A DNA stretch of 64,000 bases from Dicyema japonicum (Eukaryota; Animalia; Dicyemida). Below the pieces are notes generated by a model. It was not told the DNA's origin. It worked only from the letters and a program-made list of their open reading frames with translations, and did not search any database. Made by a program: the position numbers and the translations under genes. This document shows positions 30,917-54,845 of this stretch, in pieces (positions within the stretch are counted from its first letter, which is position 1; each line of letters opens with the position of its first letter). The stretch is from assembly GCA_011109175.1 (NCBI GenBank), contig RDEW01000001.1, positions 729,607-793,606 of the forward strand. The letters are read 5' to 3'.

Positions 30917-31121
30917 TAATAGATAAAAAAACTGTGATCATATTAAAAAAACTGTGATCCTGTCTGGCGTAACCATAAAAAAAGTTGAAAATGCAGAAGA
31001 CCTTGACTACTTAAAAGAGAAAACAAGAAAAGAGCTTCTTAAAAGAGGATAATTACGAAATTATTATGAAAGTGCTTGGGAGCATTTAAAATAAAAAAAA
31101 CAACGAGAAAATTAATAGCAG

Positions 31122-32416
31122 TTAAAGAACAGGAAGATATTCCATTGATCTTATATTTCGGCATTTAATAACAAATGTGATGAGTCCGATGATTGTAAGT
31201 GCGAGAAAAGAGAACATAATTCCTATAATTATAAAATTTTTTGAATCATTAGAATTTGTATTTTTTCCAGGAGTTACTTTTTCAAAACACTCTGACTCTA
31301 AAATTCAGGAAAAATCAAACCTTTTCCAGTATAATGGGAATTAAACTCACTCTGAAGAATTTGTGCCTTAAATGATGAAAACTCAGCATATATGTCATCA
31401 GAAAATTTAGTGAGAGACAATTCGAAGTTACAGGAATTTCCAACATCAATCAATTTGGTTTTATTAGGACTCCAAGACCCGTTATAGATATTATTGATGA
31501 CTATCTGAATTTTGGAAATATAATATTTGTTTTGAGACAAAATAAATGTAAAAAGTATCTCAAATTAAAACTCCTTAAGAGATAACACAACACTATTGTT
31601 ATCAAAGTTAATCTTCGAATTCAGATTCTCGAAAACTAACAAATTATCAATCTAATATTAAAATATACAATTTACAATTTCTACAGTGTGATTATAAAAA
31701 AAGGTGATTCTAAAATGCCCACTTAATATTCCTTTCAGTCGATTTTCCGCAATAAAATACCAATATTGAACATTTGGATCGTTAGATGGATCACAGTCAT
31801 GTGCTAAATTAAATTATGTCAAACCTTTTCCAATAAAATATGGATTTGATTGTTTAATGTAGTATTCTATCACCAAAGAATATAATGTGAGAATATTACC
31901 ATTCTCAAAACTTACGGACATATATCCGCATCTGTAATAATCTCCATGTTTAATATTTGGTAGATTTGTTGTATTTGTGTAGGTTTTATTATCTTTGAGT
32001 GTTAACTATTAAATACTAGAATTTAATTCTATTTTTATTGAAATGTTGTAAAATTTGTCTGAGAATTCAATAAAAAATTGGTAGATCAAATTATTTGTTT
32101 TGATTGTAATTGGCATTTTATCATAAAAGTGGTGAGAAATAGTTTTAATTGAATAATTGTTTGTCTACCATTATTATTCATAAAATACATTTGTAAGTGT
32201 ACTTTTCAATACACTTTTAAAATATACTGACATTGGATGTTTAAAGTCGAAATTCCTGATTGAGGACAAAAATATTAACAACAACATAATATGTAAAATG
32301 AACACGTTATAAAATACATTTGTAAGTGTACTTTTCAATACACTTTTAAAATATACTGACATTGGATGTTTAAAGTCTAAATTCGTGATTGAAGACAAAA
32401 ATATTAACAACAACAT
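31122..32416 (-). pseudogene. LAMP-like glycoprotein cassette gene, copy 1 (one premature TAA, exon 1 tandemly duplicated)
   Basis: Same 6-exon structure as 42955-44119; in-frame TAA at 31565-31567; ATGs at 32416 and 32287 (129-bp duplication); ends KCRNIRSMEYLPVL*. Confidence 0.85.
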
Positions 32417-33985
32417 AATATGTAAAATGAACACGTCGATGTGTATAATTTAGGTCACTCGTTATATTATTGAATTTATTTTTAATAATTAAAAAAATGA
32501 TTTTTATATTAATTTTATAATTACACTTATTTTCATGAATTCATTAATCAAGAAAGTCCTACACCATAATGCAAAGTTATACGTCTTTAAGAATTTCATG
32601 GTATTTTATCGTAATCCACCAAAAGTCCTTCGGTTTTGGCGGAATTTTTAATGATCGAAGAAAAACTTAATCAGCGATATTCGTAAATGATCAAAACAAC
32701 TATTTTATCGCACAATCGAATAAATATTTGTTACCAAATGATTTAATATATCTTTAAATTGTAAACGTATTTCCTTTAATTCGTCAGGGGAAATGGGTTC
32801 TCAATTATGAGACTGGCCACTAGTAGTTAACTGCTTGTTTTTGTATTAAACCGTTTTTATTTAAAAAACTTGTTACCAAATGATTTAATATATCTTTAAA
32901 TTGAAAACATATTTCCTTTAAATCGTCAGGGGAAATGGGTTCTCAATTATGAGACTGGCCACTAGTAGTTAACTGCTTGTTTTTGTATTAAACCGTTTTT
33001 ATTTAAAAAAATATTAATACTAGGAGAATATTCTGAAGTGAATTGAATATAAAAATTAAAGCCAGTATTAACAAATAATACAGATATTCATTAATAGGTG
33101 GCATAAAAGGAATTCATACACAAATCGTTAATTCATACACTAATTCATTAATAAATTTTTGCTGCTTTTATGTGCTAAAGTGGATAGGATAAGATAGTAA
33201 ATTGGTTTATTCGNCAGGGGAAATGGGTTCTTAATTATGAGACTGGCCACTAGTAGTTAACTGCTTGTTTTTGTATTAAACCGTTTTTATTTTAAAAAAA
33301 TTTTAATACTAGGAGAATATTCTGAAGTGAATTGAATATAAAAATTAAAGCCAGTATTAACAAATAATACAGATATTCATTAATAGGTGGCATAAAAGGA
33401 ATTCATACACAAATCGTTAATTCATACACTAATACATTAATAAATTTTTGTTGCTTTTATGTGCTAAAGTGGATAGGATAAGATAGTAAATTGGTTTATT
33501 GGTCGGGCCTCTATTCCTTAAATGTCTAATTAATGACATACTAAGTCTCCCGGTGGTATGAATATAAGGATTTGTTTTTTCTCAAATCATAGCGAAATTA
33601 GCAGAAAGGTCACGAACAATGAAGCCAATGACAATTCCATCTAAACTTGAATGTTTTCATAAACTCATTTTATTAAAATTATACAATTTTATTTATTTAA
33701 CAGTTCTTACGGAAGGAGCATGTATTGTTTCCATTACTTAAACCTCACCTTAGGCAAAAGTCACACTTTATTTTAAGAGTAGAAGCAGTAGTGTGAATTA
33801 ATCAAAAGCATATCTAAGACATTGAAAATTTTCTTGACTTTTTTTTGTTTGTGAGTCCCAGAAGACAATTCAGTTCCGAGTGATGACATGCTCGCTGATA
33901 ACGGCGTCACTCGTTAACCCTAATTTTATTTTTGTTATAATTTGGGCGATTTTTTTGACTTTATAAATGCGAAATTTTGACCTAA

Positions 33986-35399
33986 AATCCGCCAATTTAG
34001 GGGATCATCAAAATCTGGCCTATTCGAGAGACTTATTGATTTTTTCGTCCATTAATAATGTAAATCCAAAAAAATTATTTATAAACAAAAAATTCAGTAA
34101 GTTTTGATTTGTTTCTTTCGTGTCATTGAAGATCCAAGCTTTTCAATAGACTCAAGATTTTCGACATTAAAGAATTCTTCTTGATTATAGAATTTTTTTA
34201 ATTTATTTGAGGCTAGAAAAGCCTCGCTAATAGTGACACCATTCTGACTTTCTTCAAGGGGTCCTTCACTATCAATTTCTTAAAGAATTCTTCTTGATTA
34301 TAGAATTTTTTTAATTTATTTAAGGCTAGAAAAGCCTCGCTAATAGTGACACCATTCTGACTTTCTTCAAGGGGTCCTTCACTATCAATTTCTTGTTCTA
34401 TTTTCTCCGAATCATTCAAATCAAGTTCTTCATTTTCATTGTAGTCAACTTCGATATAAAGTCTCTCTTCTAAAGGATCACTTATGTTCATTTTGTCTAG
34501 AATATATTCTAATTTTTAATAACAGGGTTTTCATAATTTATATTTTCAATGTTTTGAATTCATTTTGCGTGCATTTGAATATTAAGAACTATCTACTTTT
34601 TTTAAGCATTGACTGAAAATCTGTCTTTCAATACTTAATAACCTGATTTAAAGTTACTACAAACACTTTTGGACTGTATCATATTGTAAAATAAACCAGT
34701 TTCGTCGGCATTATAAACATTGAGCTCCATGGAGATTGATTTTATTTTTGATTAATTCAATAAAATCTGATACCACATTAGGCTCACAATTTAAAGTTGC
34801 AGATTTTCCATGCATTTTTCATAACTTAAAACCATTCCTCTTTTTAAATTTAACAAGCTACCTTTTGGTTCCTTTGAATCAGTGATCTTACGTTTCTATG
34901 CAAATATTGTGGCTATCTCAGTAATAATTTAATCGTTCAAAATGGCTCCTTTAACATTCATTGAATTAACCTAGGAAATCTTATCATAATGATTTCACTT
35001 CACTTTAAATATTCTTTGCGAGAAATGTCAGATCGTAGTTATTCAACATATTTTCAGATCCTCTTTTACTTCTCAGATCATCAGTGAATTTAAGAGAAAA
35101 AAGTGCATTATATTTTTTGGAAAAAATTTCTGAAATTTTTATTGAGAGTATTCAATATTCAATTCAATAAACTTTAAAATGGCAATTTTTGTTTGTTGTT
35201 TAATCGTGTGCAGCTACATTTCATAAAAACAACAATAAACAATGACAACGTGATAATAAGTTATTTTAAAAAATATTTAAAATTAAGAGACATGGCGGAT
35301 TCATTAAATAAATCTAGCGGATACAAGAAATTTTGTTAGAAAAAATGGCGGATTCGAGAATTTATTAGTTATAATCGGCGGATCCGAGAGACTTTACTG
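33986..35399 (-). mobile_element. Internally deleted Tigger/pogo transposon, one TIR truncated
   Basis: Ends GGATCCGAGAGACTTTACTG|TA; begins in TIR remnant AATCCGCCAATT; minus strand encodes VKFKKRNG...MHGKSA and NADETGLFY (CENP-B HTH/DDE motifs) and shares 34000-34540 with the MITE at 30432. Confidence 0.85.
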
Positions 35400-35659
35400 T
35401 AATTGTTTTAAAATGTAAGAATTATATATACTCTCTATATTTGGGGCACTTTTCTATTGGGGCGGGGTTGTACTGTAGATTGATTTGCTTTTCTTCATAA
35501 TAGTCGATTGTTTTGACAAATTATTGCGAAGCCACCTGTGTAGATGGCCTCTCTCCTTCTAACCTTGTTATGACAGCAACTAACCTAGACTCTTCTTCGG
35601 GGAGGCTAAAACCTTAAAGCTGAAGAAATACGTATGTCCCGGTGGACAGTTCATTTTTG

Positions 35660-36390
35660 ATCAGTATCCGTGGAGACTTCAAAATTTAAAAAAAGCAGGT
35701 CAATGATTCTGCTAGACAGAATCAGATCGCTCGTCGCGAAGAAAAATGATAAGAAGTTTAAAAAAATATGATAAATTCAAGGTCATTATACCGCACAATC
35801 GATTGTTACAATTCATATAGAAAGTTGCTCAATTTTAATATCATTCTCTTAAGCGATCTTAAAAAGAGATCTTCTAAGGCCCTATGACTTAACTTGTCTC
35901 GGCGACAACGGTCTGCTCATGAAATCTAATCAAAGGCTGTTGCAATTGGTTATTTAAAGTTCTCGAATACTAGCAATGCCTCCTTAACATTCAATGGGGA
36001 ATCTTATAATTTTGACTGCAAAAAGGTGTATGCAGATGCCACATTGCGATTCAGATTTTTTCAGAGATAAAAAAACTGTGATCATATTAAAAAAACTGTG
36101 ATCCTGTCTGGCGTAACCATAAAACAAGTTGAAAATGCAGAAGACCTTGACTACTTAAAAGAGAAAGCAAGAAAAGAGCTACTTGAAAGAGGATAATTAC
36201 GAAATTATTATGAAAGTGCTTGGGACCATTTAAAATAAAAAAAACAACGAGAAAATTAATAGTAGTTAAAGAACAGGAAGATATTCCATTGATCTTATAT
36301 TTCGGTATTTAATAACAAATGTGATGAGTCTGATGATTGTAAGTGTTAGAAAAGAGAACATAATTCTTATAATTACAAAATTTTCGAATC
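35660..36390 (-). repeat. Partial LAMP-like cassette (copy 4): TM/tail exon fragment 36266-36390 plus downstream flank
   Basis: Minus strand encodes ...FSFLTLTIIRLITFVIKYRNIRSMEYLPVL*; the flank matches 30920-31120, 44120-44560 and 54390-54845. Confidence 0.85.
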
Positions 36391-36769
36391 TCGAATGTTA
36401 CAAATTTTGAATGGAACGTAGACAAGTCTACATTGAGAGGGAACAAGGGAGTTAATAGTTAATTCCCAAACTAAGGAAATTAATAAAATTTTCAATTCTT
36501 AGAGGTTTCTTAGATTTTATTTGCAGTCAATAGGAAATTGAGGTTGAGATGGTGACGACATCTCTATTGCACAAATGTCTGAAACGAACTTAAAGCTCTT
36601 ATTATAATTAGCACTTTTACGAGAGCCATGATATCTATAGCCCCGCATGTACAGCAAAGAATATAAGAGAATTAGTTAGGTTGCTCCAAACTCTTCTGTT
36701 CTTAGCTAGAACCATCAGTGAGTCCAGATCGTTCTTCACGGCCTTCAAATCGTTTTATAAAACGACCGG

Positions 36770-39110
36770 ATGGACCCCACATCACTTGCAAATTTGGGAA
36801 TGGAATAATATTTTGTTGCAAGTGGAAAGAAATATTGGGGGCGCCCGCGTACTACGCTACCGGGGGAGCTAGATGAGGATCTCAAGGCAATCAACCGGAG
36901 GCTCGTGAGTGGGGAGAACCGAAACCGAAAACACTTTATTCAACAGGAATTAGGAATTAGCTTGGAGGTTATTTACGAGTCCGCCTATGCGGCCTGGACT
37001 CTTCCGATGCACCCCATCTCCATTTTAATCTCTTCCTAGCGTCGGATCCCTTGATCCTCTTTCCAAAATTTTTTGACTGGTGCAAGAATCTTGTTTTCTT
37101 TCGTACTTGGGACATCAAACAACTTTTTTCCCAAGGCCAACTTTATTGCTGACCTTCTCGACTTTTCCATGAGTAACATTATCCTATCTCTTTGGCGAGA
37201 GAAAAACCACGCTTCACATTCTTATAGTAGCTCCGGTAGAATAATCCTCATGAAGATAAACAAGAAGGTCTCCAAGCTTACGAAAAACTTGCTTGTACAG
37301 AGAAGCGCTTGTAGCGTCTTCTTCCTTCTTCGTCTGACATCCTCCATGAAGGAACCTCCTCCATCGATGACTATCCCGAGGTAGCGGAGTGAATTTACTT
37401 TTAGAATACAAAGCGAGTAGGGCTGCGTAGGATGTCTCCGTAGACGACTAACTCTCAAGTATCTGGACTTCTCAGTAAAGAGTCTCATCCCTCTCTTGGA
37501 GCACCAATCTTGCACTTGGTCAATGAATGACTTGATTCTTCTTTCCGATAGAGTTGACTTCCTCGACGTATTCGTAATCAGAATATCATCTGCGTATATT
37601 ATCAGTTTGGTGTTCGCATCCGACGGAGTAGGGAAATCAGACAGAAACACATTGAACAGAAGAACGCCCCTCTTCAATAGGAAATCCTTTGACATATTTG
37701 CCCCAACACGTATTCGGGAAGTACGTCCTGTTAAGAAATCTTTTATCTATGTGAAGAGTTTCTTTTGGATGTTAGCAGCCGCTAGCCTTGATAGGAGGGC
37801 TTTATGCCACACCCTATCGAGGCCTTGGACAGGTCCAAACACACCAGGTTGATTTGCCTCTTGAATTCCAGACCTCTCAGTACCATCGAATGCATGTGAT
37901 GGATACAATCCGTGCAGGATTTTCCGGGTCTGAAGTTACATTGTTCCGCGAGGAGGAAACAGGTCTCTTCCATGTGTTCGTTTAGTCTCTTTAAGATAAT
38001 TCTCACAGCAATCTTGGAGATAGAGCAGATTAGGCTGATTGGCCTATAGTTGAGGGGGTCTCTCCCCGACTTTCCTGATTTAAGTATCATCCTGACAATA
38101 GAGATTTTCCAGCGTCTTGAAATATATTCATGATCAATGCTTGCGTTGAATAAGTTTTTCAGCACGAGCAGCAGATCTTCTTGACCTTCCTTGAACATTC
38201 TCATGCTAATATGGTCATGTCCAGGGCCGTTAGCTTTGCATGCTCTAATAGCAATAACGATGTCCTCTTGGTTATTTTCATATCAGTATCTTTGAGATTG
38301 TCCGGGGAGTAAGTAAGAAGTTCTTTTGAAGCTCTCAACTCTTCCCTCGGGATCAGCTCCGTCGGGTTGACTCCCTGGATACGGTCTAGTTGCTTCTTAA
38401 AAATATCTGGGACTTCTTCCATAGAATATGATCCACCTTCCGGTTTGTTCAGAAAGATTTTCATATCAGTTCTCTTCTGGCCTGTTATTCTTTTGTAGAT
38501 CTTCTAGAACGAACGGTCTTTGGTTTTAGTTTGCTTCCTTCGACCCTCCAACATTGTTCTATTGCCAGTCATGTTCCCTCTTCAATGGCTTTTTTGATTA
38601 TCTTTAGTTGACCAGTCAATGTAATCCATCCAGTCTACACATCTTCTGAGTTCGTTCCTCAGTCGGTTTATTTCTTTAATCATAGATAGCGTAGAAGGAG
38701 AGAAATTAATGCTCTTCTTATAAATGGTACCGGGGAGTCTCCTCCTGGCGTAAAGTGATATGTATATCTCCATCACAATTGAAAGGTCTCTGTCTATGTT
38801 GTCAATATCACTTCGGGGATAAGGCCCCTCCTTCCAGTTTTTGAGGTTTCTAGATATGTATTTTCTATAGTGTCCCCAATTCAGTCTAGTAGCCTGTGAA
38901 CAATGACTCCGTAGTGTCCGGAGTCAAGTTCAGTGACATCTCTTGAGGGATGTGGTCGCTCCCGATTTCCCACATGATCATCGGTCTTTCCACATAAGTG
39001 TAGAGAAGTTGTGACACCAGGAACACCCCAGGCATGTCTCCCCCGTAGTATGAGAAGTGATTCGGCTTCTCTAACGTCATAATCTCGAAGCCAGTCATTT
39101 CGCTCAATTT
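36770..39110 (-). mobile_element. Degenerate Jockey/CR1-like LINE ORF2 (endonuclease, RT, C-terminus)
   Basis: LKNLFN...WKISIVRMILKSGK...NYRPISLICSISK...FRPGKSC; LLFNVFLSDFP...YADDILI; YLGIVID. Confidence 0.9.
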
Positions 39111-39130
39111 TCTTAGCCTGATTCCATNAC

Positions 39131-39292
39131 TTCTTTTTTTCTTTTTCTTCTGTGTGGGTCTTTTTTAGACTATCCAGTTGCGCAGTGAATGTCCACTGAT
39201 GACGGGTTCATTTGTCAAGCCTTTTTAACATCGTAGATAGGTGGAACCTTTCACCAGGTGAACAGCTGCGAGAATCTATGCCACCCGGAAAT
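39131..39292 (-). mobile_element. SINE family A copy (5' truncated)
   Basis: CGCAGCTGTTCACCTGGTGAAAGGTTCCACCTATCTACGATGTTAAA...GACCCACACAGAAGAAAAAG matches 51590-51730. Confidence 0.8.
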
Positions 39293-39830
39293 TTAATCAG
39301 TCATATTTAATTAAAAAAACAAACAAACAGTATTTCCCAGATTTCATTAAATTTTGATTTTCAATAGATTGACGTGATTAAGAATAACTAGACAACTGCT
39401 AAACCTTGTGCATATTGATGATTTTCTGTATTAACATTTTAGCATTAAAAATTGATTTTGCTCATTACTAAGTACACCATTGAACAATAAATTGCTTCCG
39501 TTGTACATCGTGAGACTCTGTAGTAGTGTAGGTTAAGTATTTTAGTTTAATCAAAGGGACAATTTATAAACATCATTTGAAATGTGTTAGATATGAATCT
39601 ATGTTATATTTATAGATTTCTGGAATCGTGATGAATTTTTTAACCTCGTCTTCAATTAAGGTTGTTAACTAAATTATATTGGTTAATAAAGTTATATTTA
39701 TAATGACTATACAAATCGAATTCAGGTGCGAGAAGAAAATCATAGTTTCTAACGCAAAAATAAAAACAAGAAAATGCGAAATCGAGAAACTATAGATTGT
39801 AATTTCATTAATTTGACCAAAGGACAGGTC

Positions 39831-40193
39831 TCATTTACGGTTTCCATATAGGTGGAAATCAAGTCGGAAGGAGCCCGGTCCTCTGTGGTTCATCCTCATA
39901 GATCCGTACTGGTCATAGTATTGTAGAACGTTTGCAATCTTTATCGCACTCATAGTAGAATCGACTGTGATCAATAGAGTCCGGTTATCTATAGGATCTG
40001 CTTTCATTGGTTCGTCTGTAGGTTTGGCCACTTCCGCGGGCTCGTGTTTCGTAAGATCATTTGCAGGTTTAGCAGGTTCTGCCTTGTACGGCGTCTTGTT
40101 ATCCAAAGTGAATAAATCAGCCGTAGCACTTCCCGAAGGACGAGAAGTGCTGCTGGCTTTCGTGGTCGTTCTTTTCTCTTTAGCAGTAACCAT
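39831..40193 (-). mobile_element. Possible ORF1 start of the LINE at 36770-39110
   Basis: 120-aa S/T/P/K-rich ORF on the same strand and upstream of ORF2; assigned by position only. Confidence 0.3.
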
Positions 40194-41804
40194 TGTCTAA
40201 TTCCGCGATCCGAATTCTATATTGGGGAGGACCTGAATGCTATCAGAAGTTTGGCGAGTAACAGGGAAGGATGGACAAGATTGATCCGAAAAATCGCTTT
40301 AAGTGCAGCACGTGTATAAATATAAAAATTATTATTCTACGATAGTTGCCTTTAATAATATTAAACATTTTAAAAAGTTATTAAACAAATCTGAAAACCC
40401 TGTAACAAATAATAGAATTTTTGTCGGATGGCGCAGTGTTATAAGTACCAGACAAAATTCAGATGTCCGGTTTGAATCTCGCTACTGTCAATCCTGGTTC
40501 AAAGATCATGCATCTAAGATACTTCAAGGCTTGACGAGTAACACCGTCGTCAGGTGATCTATTAAAGAACTCGTTAAATGATAACTGATTTTCTGAAGAG
40601 CCGACAGTGTTTGATGTTCTTCATTTTTGTCTGAAGTAGTAGTTCATATAATACTGCATTTTACGGAGAGCCTTATTAGCTATTGCTCCTTCCTGGTAGG
40701 ATCCACACTTTATTTTAAGTAAAAAACAGTTATCATAACTAATTGATGAGGGAAAATCAATGAATGAGCTTATTGCCCGATAACTGATTGTTAAATACCC
40801 AGGTTTCCCAGATTCACGAATTTCCTTACCTCCGTCAATTTCCAATTATTATTATTATTAAATACAAAAAATCACCGACAAATTAAATAACTACATAGCC
40901 GCCAGGTGATTCCGGCCGCCTCGAGTAGCCATCTCATTCTTGCTCGGTGTTCTTCCAGGGTTCTAACGCATTTCCGGATTGGGCGGGGGTTTCTAACTTT
41001 TTTGTAGGGTAGTAAGGCTCCGGATTTCCTCACAAATTCATCAAAAGGTGTAGGGTTTAGAGGTCTCCAAGAAAACCTTTGCAAAACCTTAATGCGAATG
41101 TATATAACCCAACCTGATACTGCACGTATAGAGACATCCCAGATATTCATAGAGTACCTGGGGTGCTTCCTTGAATTAACAAATAGAGATCTTGTCCTTT
41201 CCAAACATTGGTTTTGGTGCATTTACCGCATTTTCAACTTTTCCAGTATTTATAGGGTTGTGACTTAGAGGTAAAGAACTAATTAATTTTCCAGCTTTTC
41301 TTTTAGAAAAGTGAAGGCTAAAGGAGACAGTCGCTCATCAGGGTTAACCTGCTGTATTTTCGAGAGTTCGTCCCTAAACAGGATAGGAATTTCTTCTAAA
41401 AATACAGGAGACCCACATGACATGGCAACAGTGGAATTTCTATTCTGGATTTACGTCCGGTTACTTTATTTAGACTTTCCAAAAGTTTGGGTTTTTTTCG
41501 ATACAATCCGCTCCACTGAGCTATCCAAAAATTATTCTTCTTTACTTTTTCTAATCTGCGTATTTCTTGCGTGATCATCATAATATCTAGCTCCATGAGC
41601 ATACGGTCATGGGGATCAGGACATCGACGTAGTTCGTTTTTGCAAACATTGTTTCCTTTTCAAAAAAACTATAATATTTTTTGTTGTCAAAAAAAGAATT
41701 CTTGTTAACCGAATAGACTTTATTCGACTATATGCTTCGAGGTACGATTAAAAAAAATAATTTGAGTCACTCGAACTCTCAAGATAAGGATACGAAGATT
41801 GCAC

Positions 41805-44560
41805 TTTTTTTAGGTCAAAATTTCCCATTTATAAAGTCAAAAAAATCGCCCAAATTATAACAAAAATAAAATTGGGGTTGACGAGTGACGCCGTTATCAG
41901 CGAGCGTATCATCTCTGCGGAACTGAATTGTCTTCTGGGAATAGACTCACAAACAAGAAAAAAAGTCAACAAAATTTTCAGTGTCTTAGATATGCCTTGG
42001 ATTAATTAACATTACTGGTCTTACTCTTAAAATAAAGTGTGACGTCTTCCTAAGGTGAGGTTAAAGTAATTGAAACAATACATACTTCTTCCGTAAGGAC
42101 TGTTAAATAAATAAAATTGTATAATTTCAATAAAATGAGTTTATGACAACATTCAATTTTAAATTAAATTGTCATCGGCTTCATTGTTTGTGACCTTGCG
42201 GCTAATTTCGTTTGAGAAAAACAAATTTATATATTCATTCCATCGAGAGACATAGTAGGTAATTAAGTAGACATTTTGTGGAATAAAGGTTCGAACAATT
42301 AACCAATTTACTATCTTATCCTATCTATTTTAAGAAAATCAGAGCAGCAAAAATTTATTAATGAATTTGTGTATGAATAAACGATTTGTGTATGAATTCC
42401 TTTTATGCCACCTATTAATAAATATCTGTATTATTTGTTAATACTGGCATTAATTTTTATATTCAATTCACTTCAGAATATTCTCCTAGTATTAATCTTT
42501 TATTTTTTAAATAAAAACGTTTTAATACAAAAACAAGCAGTTAACTACTAGTGGCCAGTCTCATAATTGAGAACCCATTTTCCCTGACGAATTAAAGGAA
42601 ATACGTTTACAATTTAAAGATATATTAAATCATTTGGTAACAAATATTTATTCGATTGTGGGATAAAATAGTTGTTTTGATCATTTACGAATATCGCTGA
42701 TTAAGTTTTTCTTCGATCATTAAAGATTCCGCCAAAACCGAAGGACTTTTGGTGGATTACGATAAAATACCATGAAATTCTTAAAGACGTTTAACTTTGC
42801 ATTATGGAGTAGGACTTTCTTGATTAATGAATTCATGAAAATAAGTGTAATTATAAAATTAATATAAAAATCATTTTTTAATTATTAAAAATAAATTCAA
42901 TAATATAACAAGTGACCTAAATTATACACATCGACGTGTTCATTTTACATAATTATGTTGTTGTTAATATTTTTGTCTTCAATCACGAATTTAGACTTTA
43001 AACATCCAATGTCAGTATATGTAAAAAGTGTATTGAAAAGTACACTTACAAATGTATTTATGAATAATAATGGTAGACAAATAATTATTCAATTAAAACT
43101 ATTTCTGCGGTGTATTATGGTAAAATGCCATTTACAATCAAAAGAAATATCTACCAATTTTTTATTAAATTCTCAGACAAATTTTACAACATCTCAATAA
43201 AAATAGAATTAAATTCTAGTATTTAATAGTTAACACTCAAAGATAATAAAACCTACACAAATACAACAAATCTTCCAAATATTAAACATGGAGATTATTA
43301 CAGATGCGGATATATGTCCGTAAGTTTTGAGAATGGTAATACTCTCACATTATATTCTTTGTTGTTAAAATACTACACTAAACTATCATATCCATATTTC
43401 ATTGGAAAAGGTTTGACATAATTTAATTTAGCACATGACTGTGATCCATCTAACGATCCAAATGTTCAATATTGGTATTTTATTGCGGAAAATCGATTGA
43501 AAGGAATATTAAGTGGAAATTTTAGAATCACACGTTTTCATAATCACAATGTTGAAATAGTAAATTGTATATTTTAATATTAGATTGATGATTTGTCATT
43601 AATTTACGAGAATCTGGATTCGAAGATTAATTTTGATAACAATAGTTTTGAGTTATCTCTTAAGGGGAATAATTTAGAGATACTTTTTACATTTATTTTG
43701 TCTCAAAACAAATATTATATTTCCAATATTCAGATAGTCATCGATGATATCTATAATGGGTCTTGGACTCCTAATAAGAGCAAATTGATTGATGTTGGAA
43801 ATTCCTGTAACTTCAAATTGTCTCTCACTAAATTTTCTGATAACATATATGCTGAATTTTCATCATTTAAGGCACAAATTATTCTGAGTGAATTTAAATC
43901 CCATTATACTGGAAAAGGTTTGATTTTTCCTAAATTTTAGAGTCAGAATGTTTTGAAGAAGTAACTCCTGTAAAAAATACAAATTCTAATCATTCAAAAA
44001 ATTTTATAATTATAGGAATTATGATATCTGTTCTAACACTTACAATAATTGGAGTCATCACATTTGTCATAAAATACCGAAATATAATAAGACCAATGGA
44101 ATATATTCCTATTTTATAACAGCAATTAATTTCCTCGTTGTTTTTTTATTTTAAATTCTTCCAGCACGTTCATAATAATTTCGTAATTATCCTCTTTCAA
44201 GTAGCTCTTTTCTTGTTTTGTCTCTTAAGTAGTCATGGTCTTTTGCATTTTCAACTTTTTTTCTGACATCGTGATTATGGAATGCGCCCAGACAGGATCA
44301 TAGTATTTTATTCTATCTTGAAAAGTCTGATTCGCAATGTGGCATCGGCATACATATATTTAGAGTTAGAGAACTTAAATAATCTATTACAAAAGCGTCT
44401 AACCAGATTTTATTAGCAGACTGTTGTCGCCGAGACGAGTGAAGTCATGGGGCCTCAAAATTTTTTTTAAGATTGCTTATGTCAATAAGATCGATATTGA
44501 GCAACCTTCTATATAAATTGTAACAATCGATTTTCCTTATAATGACCTTAAATTTGAAGA
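41805..44560 (+). repeat. ~2.75-kb LAMP-like gene cassette, copy 2
   Basis: Collinear with 52300-54845 (+) and 30920-33985 (-); starts in a SINE-A-like remnant at 41876-41966. Confidence 0.9.
42955..44119 (+). CDS. LAMP-like type-I membrane glycoprotein, 349 aa, 6 exons, intact
   Basis: Introns 43054-43076, 43219-43242, 43411-43431, 43560-43583 and 43918-43940 (21-24 nt, all GT-AG) give a 1050-nt stop-free CDS: MLLLIFLSSITNL.. signal, GDYYRC..AHDC, DPSNDP hinge, VGNSC..FKAQI..SEC, TM FIIIGIMISVLTLTIIGVITFVI, tail KYRNIIRPMEYIPIL*. Confidence 0.85.
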
Positions 44561-45019
44561 CCATGACATCGGTCCCTGATTTTTAAAGGAAAAACAAAAT
44601 TTCTAATCTTGTACAAAAACATGTTCGACGTAATATATAACAAAAATGGGAGACCTTATAAATTTGGATTGGTTAAAGTCAAATTCTTGAACGGGTTAGG
44701 GTGAATTAGAATGGATTAGGATGTATTAGAGAACGATTTTGGGTAATTAGAGCATCGGTTGTTTCTATACATTCATAAAGTTTATTTTATTGACAGAATA
44801 CGATGTTCGAACTCTAATTAAATTCACTTTTAAGTTTTATCCATAAATTCTTTTTTTTATTTTTGATATTAATATATTATTACTATAAATAAATCCTTAG
44901 TTAAACGCAATTCAAATTTTATTATACATAATTCAAATATGAATTTTTTAGGGTTTCTGTGTTATCCAAGCGTCAGCGCTCTTAAAAAGAGAGTGCAACC
45001 ACCAAAAAACCAGAAGTAT

Positions 45020-45480
45020 TCAGGATAACCCTGATTAATGCCCGTTCTTTTTGGAAACGGGCCTCAGTGCTGGTTGCTCTAGCCAGCACGATCCAAATGG
45101 ATGTTCTAATTATAAACGAAACTAAATTGAAGAAAAGACCAATTAAAATTGATAGATACGACTCATTAGATAATTGTTGGAAGATTGGTTCTTGTGCTAG
45201 AACAGGAACTTCAATTTACTACAAAACTTCTTTAAATACAAGACTACCCACGATCGATGAAAAAAATCTTTGTGAACTAGCAAGCATTCAACTACAAACA
45301 ACCATGGGATGGATAACTATCGGAGGAATCTATTCTAAAAAAACTACGAGAGTATCCATGGATTGTTGACAAATATGGAAAACAATAAATATCCAATCCT
45401 TGTTGGGGACATGAACGCTAAACATACTGACTATAATTGTGTAACAAACAATCAAGATGGAAAATGTTTTTGTAAAATGG
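45020..45480 (+). mobile_element. Jockey-like LINE endonuclease fragment
   Basis: LINARS...DVLIINETKL...GTSIYYK...IGGIYS...ILVGDMNAKH. Confidence 0.8.
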
Positions 45481-46849
45481 ACAAAGTCTGGAGAGTTAAA
45501 GATTTTAACTTCAGTCGAAATTATGCAATTAAACTCGCACATGGATTGGATTAGCATTTTTAATTCTTTTGATAATGTTGCAATTGTTCAATTCTTTTGG
45601 TTATAATGGAAATACATCGTGATTTCTTTGGTTTCATTAATGACTCCTGTAACAATATGTTTTGGACTGATAAGTTTGACATATCATACCGGACACGAAG
45701 ATGGCCCGGGTTCTCATACAATACGACAATAAATGAATAAATTCTCACAGTTTATCACGAGTCCTCTTATATTTTTTTATTTTAATTAATTTAAAAAAAT
45801 AAATTAAAAATTTAACTTTGGCGGTAAATTTAAATTTGATAAATATTGAGCCAGGAAGAAAACAGTCAGAAATAGTAATCTACTAAATAATTTAATTAAT
45901 TTAAAAAAATAAATTAAAAATTTAACTTTGGCGGTAAATTTAAATTTGATAAATATTGAGCCAGGAAGGAAACAGTCAGAAATAGTAATCTACTAAATAA
46001 TATTAGTTTCTTCTAATATACTAAACAACTCACTTCAGGAAATAATCTCTGATTTGAATAAAAAAAGATGAGGATATATTTATTCAAACAAATTCAAGGA
46101 AGAAATGGAGAAATTTACTAGAATGGAGTGAATCCAAGAGAACTTGTACAATGCTTATGAACAAGAAAGGAGGATACTTGAAAATAACATTGACGTTATA
46201 ATAGCACTAATTACTAGAAAATCAAGGAATCAATTCAAGAGATAACGAATGAAGAGGTTAAGATAGGCAAATTCAAATCATCTTTACTATTATATGGATC
46301 TAGTCTATATTTTCAATAGTTTGTCGTTACCTTATTTTATTGGATGTATGTGGACTGAAAAGAAGGAGTTCGAATTTATTTGACGTCCTATATTTCTTTT
46401 ATATTAAGCGGTTTTAAGGATTTTATAGAGGAGGCAGTTTTGTAGGTTGATTGCACTCAGGAGATCATTTTGACGGAAGTATTCAAAATGGATATAATCG
46501 AGTCCGATGACTATGTTGGTGTCTTAATGAATAATTTGTGTAAGGAAAAGCGGAGGGAAATGAATATTCCGTTTTGTGTTGAATAAACATGTTATTGAGG
46601 ATGTTGGTTTTACTGCTGTGATGTAGTATGTATGTAGAAGAGTTGAGAAGGATTTTACATAAACTACTTCGACCCAGGTTTATACACGAGGCATGTTAAG
46701 GCTTTAAAGTTCCTTTTCCTGCAAAAAGACGATTTCGTACGAATATAAGAAAAAAGGGAGTTGTGAAAGTGTAGAACATTCGAAAACATCATTGGGAAGA
46801 ATTATTACCCAAGGATTACTAAATCCAAAAAAACGAAGTAAAGTTTTTA

Positions 46850-47760
46850 ATTTACTAATTGATCCCAGACAGACAATGGGAAGGACGAGTACAGTGGGGT
46901 CGAGAATCCTGAACGTCCCTTCTCATTAGACATGACATCGGCTCAAAATTTTGGTATGATTGTAGATATTTCGATTGTGTATGGAATAGAGGGGAGCTTG
47001 GTAAACTAGCCTCCTTTAAGAGTTATCGTTATAATTAGAATAAGAGATTCTCAATGGGCTGGATTTTGTGTTCTGGTCCAATTATCTTTATTGCGGTCTC
47101 TTCGATTGCGGATAGTTTCAATGAGGAGAAAATCTGCATTGCCCACAAAGGACTTGCATACGACATCATGGGTCGGATTGATTGTTAATAAATCGTGCAA
47201 ATACACCAGTGTGTTTTTAAGTGATTTTGAGAGAACTTTTAAAATTCTCATTTTTTTAGAGCAGAATTTACTACGTTCTCAACATGTCTGATAAAAGTGA
47301 GTCCCTTATCAAAGGTGAATCCCAGAATTTTCGGTGTTTTGTCAATAGAAATTTCCTCGTTCTTCATAAAGAATTTTGGTTTGACACAGAGCTGTCTTTT
47401 ATATGTAACAGCGTTACAGAAGACCCAAAAATCTTAACTCCCTACACGAAGGCAATTACGAATACTTTGCGGGGTACAATGTCCGACACGTATCAAAAAT
47501 GAGGCACTGTACCAAAAGTGCTTAACGCGACCTGCCCACATCACTTGCAAGTTTGGAAATGGAAAAATATTTTGCTGCAAGTGGAAAGAAATATCGGGGG
47601 AGCTCGCACTACGCAACCGGGGAAGTTGAATGAGGATCTCAAGACAATCAACTAGAGGCTCGTAAGAGGGGAGGAAGGAAACCGAAAACTCTTTATTCAA
47701 CAAGAATTAGGAGTTAGTTTGGAGGTTATTAACAAGTCCGCCTTTGCTGGCTAACAAGTC
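46850..47760 (-). mobile_element. 3' portion of the same LINE family as 36770-39110
   Basis: 47535-47745 is highly similar to 36775-36995 (ACATCACTTGCAA...TTTATTCAACA.GAATTAGGA). Confidence 0.7.
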
Positions 47761-47971
47761 CGCTTTCGCTGGCTCGAATTTTCCATTGACAATTTGTTAG
47801 ACTTGAAGATATTGAAACATTGTATTCTAACATATTATGTCACATGGGCGACGCGTAACGCATGGGCAGCCTGTTACATTTTTTCGACCTTGAAAAGGTC
47901 TTTTGATTATCCGACATTATTATTATTACCCCCAGGATCACTGGGTCAAAAAGAAAGAAATAAAAGTTCTC

Positions 47972-48770
47972 NNNNNNNNNNNNNNNNNNNNNNNNNNNNN
48001 NNNNNNNNNNNNNNNNNNNNNNNNNNNNNNNNNNNNNNNNNNNNNNNNNNNNNNNNNNNNNNNNNNNNNNNNNNNNNNNNNNNNNNNNNNNNNNNNNNNN
48101 NNNNNNNNNNNNNNNNNNNNNNNNNNNNNNNNNNNNNNNNNNNNNNNNNNNNNNNNNNNNNNNNNNNNNNNNNNNNNNNNNNNNNNNNNNNNNNNNNNNN
48201 NNNNNNNNNNNNNNNNNNNNNNNNNNNNNNNNNNNNNNNNNNNNNNNNNNNNNNNNNNNNNNNNNNNNNNNNNNNNNNNNNNNNNNNNNNNNNNNNNNNN
48301 NNNNNNNNNNNNNNNNNNNNNNNNNNNNNNNNNNNNNNNNNNNNNNNNNNNNNNNNNNNNNNNNNNNNNNNNNNNNNNNNNNNNNNNNNNNNNNNNNNNN
48401 NNNNNNNNNNNNNNNNNNNNNNNNNNNNNNNNNNNNNNNNNNNNNNNNNNNNNNNNNNNNNNNNNNNNNNNNNNNNNNNNNNNNNNNNNNNNNNNNNNNN
48501 NNNNNNNNNNNNNNNNNNNNNNNNNNNNNNNNNNNNNNNNNNNNNNNNNNNNNNNNNNNNNNNNNNNNNNNNNNNNNNNNNNNNNNNNNNNNNNNNNNNN
48601 NNNNNNNNNNNNNNNNNNNNNNNNNNNNNNNNNNNNNNNNNNNNNNNNNNNNNNNNNNNNNNNNNNNNNNNNNNNNNNNNNNNNNNNNNNNNNNNNNNNN
48701 NNNNNNNNNNNNNNNNNNNNNNNNNNNNNNNNNNNNNNNNNNNNNNNNNNNNNNNNNNNNNNNNNNNNNN
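47972..48770. other. Assembly gap (799 N)
   Basis: Run of N; the four long ORFs spanning it in the track are artefacts. Confidence 1.
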
Positions 48771-49011
48771 AGTAGCAGCCATACACATTTGCATTTGGAA
48801 AAATTCTGTTGATAGCATTGATCCCTGCTCCCTCATAATCTATGGTAAATGACGTACATGTTTTACACAATGTAGCATGCATAGTGTATAACTGAAAACC
48901 TAATGGAGCTGAATCAAAAGTACCATCACACAACCAATGTTCTTTCATAGACATAAGATAAAGGTTTTTTGCTGTTGTTAATAAAAGCAATCCATCACTA
49001 TTGTGTAGCAC
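48771..49011 (-). mobile_element. MULE/Mutator transposase fragment running into the gap
   Basis: WLCDGTFDSAPLGFQLYTMH...IDYEGAGINAINRIFPNANVYGCY (DGTF / D.E.A..NA...FP...GC.FH). Confidence 0.85.
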
Positions 49012-49829
49012 TACATTTTTATTTGTTTTATCGTTATTCTGTTACTAAGGTGGTTTGCTAGGCCTGTAATTTTCATTACTGTTGTCTAGAGTAGGTTAAT
49101 AGAGCTTGTTAACTTTTAGGCTCAGTGTTTTTGATTCAACAATATGACCACCTCAGTAAAACTTTAACGGATCCTTGGCCGTACTCTGTCAACAAAATTT
49201 ATACATTTATGGAGGATGTTACAACATAAATCAACGTTCGGCATTATATTGGCAGTAGTTGACCAGAACTTAGGTATCTAAATACTCTCTAGACTGTGAT
49301 ATATCCAAAAATGAGGCAACTGATTCCGCCTGTTGGTCTCTCAAAGAACTGACTACCACCTATAGTGAAGAAGTAGTTTAGAGCGAAACCATATTTGTTG
49401 GCCTACTTAGTGTTTGCATGGTTCTGGAAAATTCAGTTTATTACTGACTTCAGCACGTGTGTGATTTCTGGCTTTTTTAGACAATATTTTATAGAAGACA
49501 ATTGGTTTGTCGATATCTTTTGCGTATTCAATTTTCAACTGAGTGCTGGGTCTTCAGAACCATTACCTAGAGGACATTCAACTTCTGGAGACCTTTCATT
49601 TTTTGATTGGAAAAACATAATGTTGCGTCAAGTGGTTTTCCTATTTAGTGACGCCCAAAATCTTGAAAAAATCATTTTCAAGATTTATTTGGACTAGAAA
49701 TGTTCTAAAAGCAGCAATTTGACTTCTTCTTTGTAATGATTTTCACCTTCATCACAATAATCAGGACGGTCTTCAACTGAATTCATGGTCAGTTCCTTTC
49801 GTTTAAAGAGAATTGATATAGATACTTCT

Positions 49830-50100
49830 TACATAATATCAAAAATATTCACAATGCAGCAAAGGCGTACTCGATACTGGGTAGAACGAATTGTTTGTAT
49901 AGAAGCTTTAACGATGGGCGGAAAGATACCGGAGAGTGAGTGAAAGCCTTGAGAATTCCAATTTTCATTTGGATCCGCGAGGTTACTAGGTCCACTTGAT
50001 GGGTAAATGTAAGTAGGGGATCCGGATGACTCTAAGAATTGAAAGGGTTTTTTTATTGGGAAACGGGGAATCATAAAATGTTATTCGTGGTGTTGTCTGT
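49830..50100 (-). mobile_element. LINE RT thumb-region fragment
   Basis: DPLLTFTHQV...IGILKAF...SLKLLYKQFVLPSIEYA. Confidence 0.65.
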
Positions 50101-50399
50101 AATTCTTTTCGTGCTGAGGTAAACGTCAGAGGGAAAGAATATAAATTTAAACCAATTAGCCACATAACACCACATGGCACAACACGGTTTTTTTCAAAAT
50201 TGATACTTTTGTTCACTTATTACAGAATTAAATAAGTATAAAAATGAAATATCCCCTCACTGATAACAAAATATTTTTACAAATTTTATTGCATTAAAAT
50301 TTAATTAAAATTGAAACTAAAACTAACAAACATAAAAAAAGCATTCCTAGCTAACATGTGAGGGATAGTAGAGAATATAGAGAATATACCTCGAAGTTC

Positions 50400-51060
50400 T
50401 TTGCCTGGTTTTGACAGGTTTCGACTTGCAAACGTAGATTCCTCTGCAATTTGGATCCTTCATCAAGCTCGTGGTCATAGTGTCCGTTGAAATGCTTCGG
50501 TTTTACTCCAACTGCTGAATGGGCCGCCCACTTTATTGCATCGATGAAGTCTTGTTACAGCTCCACAGGCATTTTCTCTTTATTCCACTGTCGGATCTTT
50601 TCTCTGAATGTATTTTGATAGCTTTCCCGAGTCGGTCCTTCAATGCAGGATTGTTCCACTACGAATTTCCTTTCTGATATATTTATGCGAGCCGCTTTAA
50701 AGCCCCAAAATATCGTTTGAAAAAGATACGTGCCACAACCAATCTGTGATCACTATCTACTGTGTCCCACTGTAGCTCGGAGAATCTGTTAGTAGTGCTT
50801 TGTAGGCTTGTTTTCAGACAATGTAATCTATTTAGTTATATATAGGCTTGATAATCCTAGATTTGTCCTTTCGGTAGGAGCTCCACATCGTCTTTTATCT
50901 TGCAGAGTGCCTGAAAGAAGTATTGATTAGAAATAGTTTGAATGTATTGCAAAATTCGACAAGCGATTCTCCTGAATGGTTCATGATCCCTACTCTATGG
51001 AATCCCATCAATTCTTCGTGACTACTCTCACGTCCAGCCTTTGCGTTGTCCGGCAATGTA
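50400..51060 (-). mobile_element. RTE endonuclease fragment
   Basis: NHSGESLVEFCNTFKLFLINTSFRH...IDYIV...DSDHRLVVARI. Confidence 0.8.
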
Positions 51061-51530
51061 TATCATGAACGACGATTCCAAAGATTCATATACTTGGGGC
51101 AAGGAAAAATAGAACTCGTATAGTTCGTCTCAATTGATTGATAATCTCACTGAAGTGCAAATAATAATAATTGAGATTATGGAATTGTTCTTTTCACCGT
51201 ATTTTAATACATATTCTATCACTCACCCTCTACGTCTTGTGGATTCGATTCTTCAGTTTTTTTGCGTATTGCAAATCCCATGTCGTAGTGTGGGCAATTC
51301 GAAAGGTGCAGATTCAGCCGGAAATCATTATTCATTATTGACTGTATCTAGTGCACTTAGTACTTTCGTTTCCTGTAAGCAAGCCATGGATACCTTGAAT
51401 GATCCAAGATCCAGGCATAAATTTTTTCTTTTAGTATCCGACTTTAATCCTCTTACATTGAACGAGCTAATAGAGAAAGATCCCGAAGAAAAGCAAGAAA
51501 AAGACATGTGTGCAATAGAGCCACGTCACA

Positions 51531-51737
51531 CTGGTGGCTTAGTGGTTAGGTATCGGGCTAAAGTGGCTTAGGTTACGGGTTCCATTTTCGCTGCTGTTCA
51601 CCTGGTAGAAGGTTCCACGCATCTACGATGTTAAATGAGTTTGACGAGTGACGGCGTCATCAGTGGATACTCATTGCGGATTTGGATTGTCTAGAAAAGA
51701 CCCACACACAAAAAAAGAAATAAAGAAATAAAGAAAA
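51531..51737 (+). mobile_element. Near full-length tRNA-derived SINE (family A)
   Basis: A-box TGGCTTAGTGG at 51535-51545, degenerate B-box GGTTCCATTT at ~51578, a body shared with several other copies, and an A-rich (AAAGAAAT)n tail. Confidence 0.75.
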
Positions 51738-52299
51738 TACTTTGGTTCTACGATTAGTTAATATTAACTATTCTTTACATAAATAAAGTGTGTGTTCTGC
51801 TTATGCGGAGTATAAATATTATGGCTTTCGTGAAGAGGCTGTTTTATTATTTTGGAAGACCAAGAATAGAAAAATTCCCAAAAGTTCCAAATGTATAACA
51901 ATGCTTTATCGGTTGTGGTACCATTTTATACTTGTCAGATCATAGCGTACTAGAGCAGGTTTGACCTCTAAAGGACTTAGGTTGAGATTATAAATGATTA
52001 ATAAATGATCACTACCAATATCACCATGCGTAATCGGTTGTTTCAAAAATTGATGATAAAAATCAGAAATTAACGCCATTCCCAAATAATCCGAGCGACT
52101 TAGAAAATAGTAATTCGGGAGTCATGGACATCACAACAGAAAACCCAGAAGACAAAGACATGTCCTTCAAAACAAGGCCTTCTCTGTTCGTCTCCAAATA
52201 ACAAAACGAGGAATCTTTCGAGTTTAACCCCCCAAAAAATCGAAAACGGTGCCTTTTCATCATCAAAAAAATTTCTCGATAAGATAAGAATACGAAAAT

Positions 52300-54845
52300 G
52301 CGAAATTTTTAGGTCAAAATTTCGCATTTATAAAGTCAGAAAAATCCCCCAAATTATAACAAACATAAAATTGGGGATGATGAGTAACGCTGTAATCAGC
52401 GAGCGTATCATCACTGCGGAACTGAATTGTCTTCTAGGACTCACAAAAAAATAAAAAGTTAAGAAATTTTTAAATGTCTTAGATAAGACTTGGATTAATA
52501 AACATTACTGCTATTACATAGTAAGTAATTAAGTAGACATCTAGTAGAATAAAGGTCGGACCAATTAAACAATTTACTATCTTATCCTATCCACAAGAAG
52601 CACATAAAAGCAACAAAAATTTAATAATGAATTCGTGTATGAATTAACGATTTATGTATGAATTCCTTTTTTGACACCTATTAATGAACATCTGCATTAT
52701 TTGTTAATGCTGGTTTTACTTTTAATATTCAATTCACTTCAATTTATTCTCTTAGATTAATCTTTTTTTAAATAAAAACGTTTTAATACAAACACAAACA
52801 GTTAACAACTAGTGGCCAGTCTCATAATTGAGATCCCATTTCTCCTGACGATTTAAAGGAAATACGTTTTCAATTTAAAGATATATTAACTCAATTGACA
52901 ACAAATATTTATTCGATTGTGTCATAAAATAGTTATTTTGATAATTTACGAATATCGCTGATTAAATTTTCCTTCGAACATTAAAGATTCTTCCAAAACA
53001 GAAGGACTTATTGTGGATTACGATAAAATATCATGAAATTATTAAAGACAGTTAACATTGCATAATGAATAGGACTTTCTTGATCAATGAATTCATGAAA
53101 ATAAATATAATTATAAATTTAAAATAAATATCATTTGTTTCAAATTATTAAAAATAAATTCATTAATATAACAAGTGACCTAAATTATACACATCGACGT
53201 GTTCATTTTACATAATTATGTTGTTGTTAATATTTTTGTCCTCAATCACGAATTTCGACTTTGAACATCGAATGTCAGTATATGTAAAAAGTTTATTGAA
53301 AAGTACACTTACAAATGTATTTTATAAATAATAATGGTAGACAAACAATCATTCAATTGAAACTATTTCTGACTACTTTTATGATGAAATGCCAATTACA
53401 ATCAAAACAAATAACTTGATCTACCAATTTTTTATTGAATTCTCAGACAAATTTTACAACATCTCAATAAAAATAGAATTAAATTCTAGTATTTAATAGT
53501 TAACACTCAAAGATAATAAAACCTACACAAATACAACAAATCTTCCAAATATTAAACATGGAGATTATTACAGATGCGGATATATGCCAGTAAGTTTTGA
53601 GAATGGTTATACTCTCACATTATATTCTTTGGTGATAGAATACTACACTAACCAATCATATCCATATTTTATTAGAAAAGGTTTGATATAATTAAATTCA
53701 GCACATGACTGTGATCCATCTAACGATCCAAATGTTCGATATTGGTATTTTATTGCGGAAAATCCTCTGAAAGGAATATTAAGTGGAAATTTTAGAATCA
53801 CACGTTTTTATAATCACAATGTTGAAATAGTAAATTGTATATTTTAATATTAGATTGATGATTTGTTATTATTTTTCGCGAATCTGGATTCGAAGATTAA
53901 CTTTGATAACAATAGTGTTGAGTTATCTCTTAAGGGGAATATTTTAGAGATACTTTTTACATTTATTTTGTCTCAAAACAAATATTATATCTCCAATATT
54001 CAGATAGTCATCGATAAAATCTATAATGGGTCTTGGAGTCCTAATAAGAGCAAATTGATTGATGTTGGAAATTCCTGTAACTTCAAATTGTCACTCACTA
54101 AATTTTCTGATGACATATATGCTGAGTTTTCATCATTTAAGGCACAAATTCTTCAAAGTGAGTTTAATTCCCATTATACTGGAAAAGGTTTGATTTTTCC
54201 TGAATTTTAGAGTCGGAGTGTTTTGAAAAAGAAACTCATGGAAAAAATACAAATTCCAATGATTCAAAAAATTTTATAATTATAGGAGTTATGTTCTCTT
54301 TTCTAACTCTTACAATCATCGGAGTCATCACATTTGTTACTAAATGCCGAAATTTGATAAGACCAATGGAATATCTTCCTGTTCTTTAATTGCTATTAAT
54401 TTTCTCCTTGTTTTATTTTATTTTAATTACTCCCAAGCACGTTCATAATAATTTCGTAAATTATCATTTTTCAAGTAGCTCTTTTTTTGTTTTTTTTCTT
54501 AAGTAGTCAAGGTCTTCTGTATTTTCAACTTTTTTTTCCGATATCGTGATTATGGGAAACGCCCAGACAGGATCATAGTTTTTTTTATTCTCTCTGGAAA
54601 AATTTGATTTGCAATGTGGCATATACCAGATTTCATTAGCAGACCGTTATCACCGAGACGAGTGAAGTCATAGGGCCTCAAAAAATCTTTTTTTAAGATC
54701 GTTAGGTCAATGATATCGATGTCGAGCAACCTTCTATATGAATTGTAACAATCGATTTTGCCGAATAATGACCTAGAATTTATCAGCGCCGAGCGATCTG
54801 ATTCTGTCTAGCAGAATCAATGATTTGCTTCCTTTAAATTTTGAC
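52300..54845 (+). repeat. LAMP-like gene cassette, copy 3
   Basis: Collinear with copy 2; the upstream flank lacks ~250 bp present at 42010-42250. Confidence 0.9.
53218..54389 (+). CDS. LAMP-like type-I membrane glycoprotein, ~350 aa, 6 exons, intact
   Basis: Same five tiny introns (first at 53317-53340); the spliced frame is stop-free and ends KCRNLIRPMEYLPVL*. Confidence 0.85.

Follow-up and report, generated by a model that had tools for sequence, protein, structure and literature searches.

Each LAMP domain has two disulfides, a trait described as showing 'complete conservation' across the family; of these, the first connects the two sheets and the second ties the C-terminus of the domain to the front sheet near the membrane (PMC3409847, Wilke et al. 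2012). The hinge of LAMP-1 and LAMP-2 is Pro-rich and approximately 30 residues long, the transmembrane helices of human LAMPs have one proline and two glycines (PMC3409847), and an animal genome normally has between one and a few LAMP genes (PMC9221867). LAMP-3 (DC-LAMP, PDB 4AKM) and CD68/macrosialin differ from this layout in having a single LAMP domain after a mucin-like region. The luminal domain of ATP6AP1 (Ac45), a single-copy accessory subunit of the V-ATPase, is a LAMP-like β-prism. Here we analysed a 64,000-nt stretch of the genome of Dicyema japonicum, a parasite of the octopus kidney (GenBank assembly GCA_011109175.1, contig RDEW01000001.1, positions 729,607 to 793,606 of the forward strand; hereafter the window, in whose positions all coordinates are given), in which a preliminary description had proposed a multicopy family of LAMP-like membrane glycoprotein genes hidden by tiny introns. 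We show that the window holds four copies of such a gene family, two of them intact, and that the predicted product resembles a divergent, two-domain relative of the LAMPs.

Gene copies split by predicted micro-introns

Removal of five GT-AG segments from one copy, here called D, joined six exons into a stop-free frame of 1056 nt, or 351 codons. Exon boundaries in two further copies, A and B, are those of D carried through a three-way alignment, and a fourth copy is truncated. The copies and their parts are as follows.

53218-54389, plus strand: gene copy D, intact, 351 amino acids (stop-free spliced translation)
53218-53316, 53341-53488, 53513-53680, 53702-53829, 53854-54187 and 54211-54389, plus strand: exons of copy D
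53317-53340, 53489-53512, 53681-53701, 53830-53853 and 54188-54210, plus strand: introns of copy D, all GT-AG, of 24, 24, 21, 24 and 23 nt
53854-54187, plus strand: exon 5 of copy D, containing VGNSC and FKAQI and encoding the core of the LAMP-like domain nearest the membrane (matches of Pfam PF01299 and of the AlphaFold2 (AF2) model)
54211-54389, plus strand: exon 6 of copy D, with the ESEC cysteine, the predicted transmembrane helix and a tail of 15 amino acids with YLPV (hydropathy, translation)
42955-44119, plus strand: gene copy B, intact, 349 amino acids (boundaries projected from D)
42955-43053, 43077-43218, 43243-43410, 43432-43559, 43584-43917 and 43941-44119, plus strand: exons of copy B
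31122-32287, minus strand: gene copy A, with 349 codons and, in exon 5, one premature stop (TAA, 31567-31565) (boundaries projected from D)
32287-32189, 32164-32017, 31992-31825, 31803-31676, 31651-31321 and 31297-31122, minus strand: exons of copy A
35679-36385, minus strand: truncated copy, codons for residues ~312-350 (36385-36272) and 3′ flank only (tblastn, E 1.9e-10)

The spliced frames of D and B confirmed the proposed family of genes split by five GT-AG introns of 21–24 nt, with products of 351 and 349 amino acids where approximately 350 had been predicted, and the earlier count of two intact copies (B and D), one copy with a single stop (A) and one fragment was likewise borne out. The fragment retains codons for the transmembrane segment and tail only, and adjoins an element resembling a long interspersed nuclear element (LINE). 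Its blastn identity to the flanks of B and D is 74–80%, and positions 36065-36364 within it are 97% identical to the 3′ end of copy A at 30921-31220. A tblastn search of the window with the full protein found no further diverged paralogues; weak collinear matches at 25148-25397 and 29197-29344, which have stops inside, were set aside as noise. The 5′ end of copy A is tandemly duplicated (32174-32434, minus strand), so that exon 1, the beginning of intron 1 and approximately 17 nt of the 5′ leader are doubled, and an open reading frame (ORF) of 86 amino acids in this copy holds the N-terminal segment (MLLLIFLSS...TLTNVFY) twice.

Comparison of the copies indicated that the frame has been kept. 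In the three-copy alignment the three indels in exons measured 6, 3 and 3 nt and the six in the 5′ untranslated region, intron 1 and the 3′ untranslated region measured 1–2 nt (Fisher test of exonic versus non-coding indel counts, about 0.012); within the gene, the sole indel of a length not divisible by 3 falls in intron 1 of copy B, which is 23 nt long. Between B and D, 78 coding substitutions created no stop codon, where simulation with the observed substitution spectrum gave an expectation of 4.0 (P(0) = 0.016). Because a stop-free frame of 351 codons in DNA of approximately 30% GC is kept in two copies differing at 78 positions, the copies go beyond what chance would provide. Intron sizes of 21–24 nt and minimal GT..AG signals are, moreover, published features of micro-intron animals, and such introns are otherwise known among animals only from a myxobolid myxozoan (PMC13644364). 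On this comparative evidence the five segments would be spliced in vivo. Substitutions leave variable patches in the ectodomain at residues 41–60, 121–140 and ~181–215; three copies are too few for a test of positive selection.

Predicted protein and its similarity to LAMPs

The predicted product has the type I layout that had been proposed. A hydrophobic N-terminus (MLLLIFLSSI), judged by eye to be a candidate signal peptide, is followed by 8–9 N-x-S/T sequons per copy, all on the predicted luminal side, a hydropathy maximum at residues 314–336 and a tail of 14–15 amino acids. The tail ends in YLPV (A and D) or YIPI (B) and one C-terminal Leu, a motif kept despite substitutions, and the putative transmembrane helix contains two glycines, 12 residues apart. 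The motifs listed in the preliminary description (GDYYRC..AHDC, DPSNDP, VGNSC..FKAQI..SEC and EY[LI]P[VI]L) are all present. So is the single Cys pair per half: cysteines lie at 104, 142, 256 and 296, with one more in the tail of A and D, and the pairs 104/142 and 256/296 comprise the only two Cys of each half. The linker after Cys142 consists of DPSNDP only. Spacings from core motif to Cys and from Cys to Cys are alike in both halves (38 and 40 residues), which favours the suggestion that the N-terminal half is LAMP-like too, but the alignment of the two halves, although in register, was non-significant (p = 0.07).

To relate the protein to known families, we used exon pieces as queries for the Pfam, AlphaFold and large protein searches. 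Among 24,736 Pfam models, PF01299 (Lamp2-like_luminal) was the top match for exon 5 of both D (E 0.015) and B (E 0.004); no LAMP match was found in Pfam for exon 4 or the tail exon, including the LAMP transmembrane region for the latter. AF2 models of exon 5 were all-β. In a Foldseek search of the PDB, the D model retrieved LAMP-3 (4akm, chains B and A), LAMP-1 (5gv0) and LAMP-2 (5gv3) at ranks 1, 2, 3 and 5, and the B model retrieved the two 4akm chains and 5gv0 at ranks 1–3. Against AlphaFold models of Swiss-Prot, 17 of the 19 top matches were LAMP1, LAMP2, LAMP3 or CD68, all on the membrane-proximal domain, where exon 5 sits. LAMP1 and LAMP3 ranked 4 and 7 among AlphaFold clusters, and a shape search of the ESM Atlas retrieved LAMP1-like and LAMP3 clusters with template modelling (TM) scores of 0.62–0.63 over 102–103 residues. 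A feature search of the same Atlas found no relative and, at low recognition, was uninformative.

Set beside LAMP-1 and LAMP-2, the predicted protein thus has in common with them its type I form, two tandem luminal domains of approximately 120–155 amino acids that carry numerous N-glycosylation sequons and are each closed by a Cys loop right before the linker or membrane, one transmembrane helix containing two glycines, and a short tail with a Y-x-x-hydrophobic motif near the C-terminus, as well as its best Pfam and structural matches. It differs from them in lacking the Gly before the Tyr, in having one extra residue after the motif, in a Pfam score below the cut-off and in an estimated copy number of tens to hundreds, LAMPs having a single gene or a few per genome (PMC9221867). 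Unlike the single-domain LAMP-3 and CD68, it appears to have a second LAMP-type domain, the shorter of the two, in its N-terminal half. ATP6AP1/Ac45 (VAS1_LD, PF05827) is also of type I and was found in the Atlas shape search at a TM score of 0.61, but has a single luminal domain; no Pfam signal for PF05827 or PF20520 was present in the exons.

Cassettes and their surroundings

The genes lie in cassettes of 2.5–3 kb, found on both strands and 85–98% identical blockwise. The cassettes and neighbouring features are as follows.

~52303-54844, plus strand: cassette D, with an AT-rich upstream region, the gene and a conserved 3′ flank (blastn, alignments with A, B and the fragment)
~41781-44555, plus strand: cassette B (blastn against cassette D, 85–88% identity)
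~30942-33987, minus strand: cassette A, with local duplications upstream of the gene (blastn)
37222-38204, minus strand: LINE-type reverse-transcriptase remnants between the fragment and copy B (Pfam RVT_1, E 5e-10 and 8e-7)
47972-48770, no strand: run of N (assembly gap) separating B from D and lying outside all copies
32996-33218/33285-33507 and 55170-55324/55408-55561: local direct duplications

The left cassette edge is sharp and common to all three full copies, and the right edges are ragged. We found no convincing terminal repeats in the cassette; the sole terminal inverted match, of 21 nt at 81%, is not kept in the other copies. Neither an ORF for an enzyme (transposase or reverse transcriptase) in the cassette nor coding potential in its conserved flanks was found.

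The LINE-type retroelement with the RVT_1 remnants spans 36681-41600 (minus strand), and related pieces lie at 47535-47747 and, upstream of cassette D, at 51584-51727. The assembly gap is approximately 3.4 kb from cassette B and 3.5 kb from cassette D, and none of the family's reading frames extends into it. Its left flank, 47535-47747, resembles the LINE at 36776-36990; on its right flank, a weak ORF similar to a Mutator-like element (MULE) at 48771-49011 (minus strand; E 0.024, under the cut-off) runs into the gap. Because the gap sits between B and D, their distance depends on its estimated length. The earlier statement that four copies lie in both orientations within 24 kb, each in a conserved cassette of 2.6–3 kb, therefore stands for the copies, their strands and the cassette, now 2.5–3 kb, and its 24-kb span rests on that estimate. 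Single N characters at 33214 and 55407, both outside coding exons, stand beside direct duplications of 95–96% identity and seem to be artefacts of gap closing and not biological features. Immediately upstream of the cluster, an ORF of 136 amino acids at 29448-29858 (plus strand) matched the APAF-1-like winged-helix model PF21296 with 26.3 bits (cut-off 27), and may be an exon of an NB-ARC/STAND-type gene.

Copy number and annotation

We aligned four sequencing runs of one sample (X1–X4, run type marked '?') on the copy D region. In X1, 3,048 short contigs of at least 95% identity fell on 2.2 kb of this region. Depth summed over 53140-54330 was, in each of the four runs, approximately 50–150 times that of the least-covered flank bin, a figure that is not a copy number, sequencing errors inflating contig counts at high depth. 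The excess in four runs places the family beyond the window, in keeping with the multicopy nature first proposed for it, and read depth suggests tens to more than 100 copies genome-wide. A dip in depth at 53584-53657 overlaps the variable patch at residues 121–140. In every run contigs match up to 54154, in exon 5 of copy D, and then go on in different shared sequence, which suggests a subfamily of paralogues with a different end of the membrane-proximal domain. Of the 31-mers sampled from copy D, 18% also occur in a further run, X6 (2015), which is labelled as another organism; near-identical members of the family may be present in a related species or strain.

Runs X1–X4 behave as DNA libraries and so give no RNA view of splicing: one loose end in X3 is a Nextera adaptor, the runs cover intergenic flanks, unitigs grow to lengths of 8–21 kb, and X1 comprises 2.2 Gb of unitigs, a total to be expected if DNA of the parasite and its host is present. 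These properties fit the libraries of the D. japonicum project, one paired-end and four Nextera mate-pair, for which octopus contamination was reported (PMC6736024).

The published genome has 36.7% GC, 49% repeats and 4.1% gaps, and its annotation masked repeats present more than 30 times before cDNA evidence was mapped (PMC6736024). The window agrees with these values in GC content, LINE load and gaps, and the runs, dated 2019, agree with that project. The paper lists transcriptome reads under BioProject PRJNA496385 and a transcriptome assembly as TSA GHAB00000000. No LAMP family is mentioned in the main text of that paper or in those of its supplements that we consulted. Because repeats above 30 copies were masked and the paper names no such family, the LAMP-like genes may be absent from the published annotation. 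Among the papers searched, none links Dicyema or myxozoans with LAMP families.

In being clustered, multicopy and in both orientations, with intact and decayed copies and variable ectodomain patches, the family resembles expanded parasite surface families (cited in PMC6736024). It differs from these in its putative LAMP-like fold and in showing no sign of positive selection (dN/dS, the ratio of non-synonymous to synonymous divergence, 0.58 overall). We know of no expanded surface family that uses a LAMP-like fold as its scaffold.

Discussion

We propose, with a probability of roughly 0.68, that these copies are real protein-coding genes of a lineage-amplified family, duplicated as cassettes, that encode a type I membrane glycoprotein of approximately 350 amino acids related to LAMP-domain proteins. 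A number of results weigh against this proposal, some on the side of LAMP ancestry and others on the side of coding function, and each group gives weight to a different explanation.

On the side of ancestry, PF01299 scored 15.6 bits (D) and 17.4 bits (B), below the gathering cut-off of 27.2, and the exons of the N-terminal half had no Pfam match. A phmmer search with exon 5 against 1.84 billion representative proteins returned no relative, only two low-complexity matches, and phmmer and a three-sequence profile run against PDB sequences gave chance matches and no LAMP. The AF2 models of exon 5, which cover one exon, had predicted local distance difference test (pLDDT) values of 51.6 (D) and 53.1 (B). 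There is one disulfide per domain instead of two, the sheet-bridging pair being absent in A, B and D; a six-residue DPSNDP linker stands in place of the ~30-residue, Pro-rich, O-glycosylated hinge; and the transmembrane proline is absent. Because only the second disulfide position is kept, the hinge has six residues and the helix has no proline, the protein is not a bona fide LAMP. Of the layout first described, the type I form, the two halves and the tail motif hold; the second disulfide per domain and the Pro-rich hinge, two defining features of LAMPs, are absent. The LAMP resemblance itself stands for exon 5, for which PF01299 ranked top in D and B and Foldseek retrieved LAMPs first, at sub-threshold Pfam scores and low pLDDT. 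Such a profile could also arise from a lineage-specific type I family with a generic β-sandwich ectodomain, its likeness to LAMPs being convergent or an artefact of weak scores and models. That explanation would accommodate sequence scores that all lie below threshold, the missing sequence matches in the PDB and among 1.84 billion proteins, pLDDT values of 52–53, one Cys pair per domain where LAMPs fully conserve two (PMC3409847), and the presence in the Atlas shape search of Ac45/ATP6AP1, said to share the fold. We nevertheless consider it unlikely, for the LAMP family was specified before the searches and topped five of them (Pfam, PDB twice, Swiss-Prot models and Atlas), the match is always to the membrane-proximal domain and correctly placed relative to the transmembrane helix, and the kept Cys loop sits at the second LAMP disulfide, the one that ties the C-terminus of the domain beside the membrane. 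The homology is thus supported, with scores below threshold, and the family is best described as a divergent variant of the LAMP domain.

On the side of coding function, dN/dS was 0.58 across all pairs of A, B and D, a sign of weak coding constraint; substitutions in the three copies were distributed 43/28/40 by codon position (p = 0.18); and introns diverged less between copies (0.9–4.3%) than exons (6.3–8.0%) and also less than synonymous sites did (dS 0.10–0.13). Taken together, these values imply that protein constraint is modest, which fits either a fast-evolving family or partial decay, and the low intron divergence appears to reflect either tight constraint on the sequence or length of introns or unusually fast exon evolution. 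If the cassette were simply a repeat, that is, a mobile or recombination-amplified element with a captured gene, most copies would be silent and decaying and B and D merely young. The weak constraint and codon-position bias, the high copy number, the sharp left edge common to three copies, the occurrence in both orientations, the two broken copies among four and a genome with 49% repeats (PMC6736024) all suit that view. It is hard to square, however, with significant stop avoidance (P = 0.016) and frame-keeping exonic indels, with right edges that are ragged and terminal repeats that were not convincingly found, with a cassette that encodes no transposase or reverse transcriptase, or with introns of the host type, and we judge it distinctly unlikely; it is in any case compatible with LAMP ancestry and excludes function only. 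A more radical alternative is that the segments are never spliced and that the 'gene' consists of chance ORF fragments in a repeat. Sequencing contigs on 52400-54600 are collinear with the genome, introns included, and no skips of 21–24 nt were found. The absence of spliced joints would be contrary evidence if X1–X4 were RNA, but these runs behave as DNA; all five introns are GT-AG and of 21–24 nt, as is typical of micro-introns; and the frame is kept in two diverged copies whose only indel that is not a multiple of 3 is intronic. We regard this alternative as very improbable.

For a coding, LAMP-related family, the simplest account of the cassettes is that they would have spread by segmental duplication of a 2.5–3 kb unit, after which LINE and MULE insertions would have split the cluster, some copies remaining intact (B and D) and others decaying (A and the fragment). 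The product would enter the secretory pathway through its probable signal peptide and be glycosylated there, and its two tandem β-rich luminal or extracellular domains would be divergent homologues of the LAMP domain, each with the C-terminal Cys-Cys loop only. Adaptor complexes could use the tyrosine motif to sort the protein between the plasma membrane and endo-lysosomes, where it may contribute to a protective glycoprotein coat of the kind that LAMPs form. Such a coat would suit this animal because it feeds entirely by endocytosis. The lysosomal location and the role as an antigen first suggested for the family are conjectural.

A bolder and doubtful possibility is that the LAMP fold gave rise to a hyper-amplified family (approximately 100 or more copies) of glycoproteins, mosaic and diversifying, in surface or endocytic membranes at the interface with host urine; if true, a metazoan parasite would have used a lysosomal scaffold to build a family of variant coat proteins. 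It would be unusual for the LAMP fold to be amplified to tens or hundreds of copies and to lose one of two disulfides that are invariant elsewhere. The dicyemid has no gut and takes up all its food from octopus urine by endocytosis (PMC6736024); for such a lifestyle, an expanded glycocalyx protein of the surface or of endo-lysosomes would be a concrete candidate at the molecular level. Beyond this family, the combination of micro-introns and repeat masking could conceal large gene families from standard annotation.

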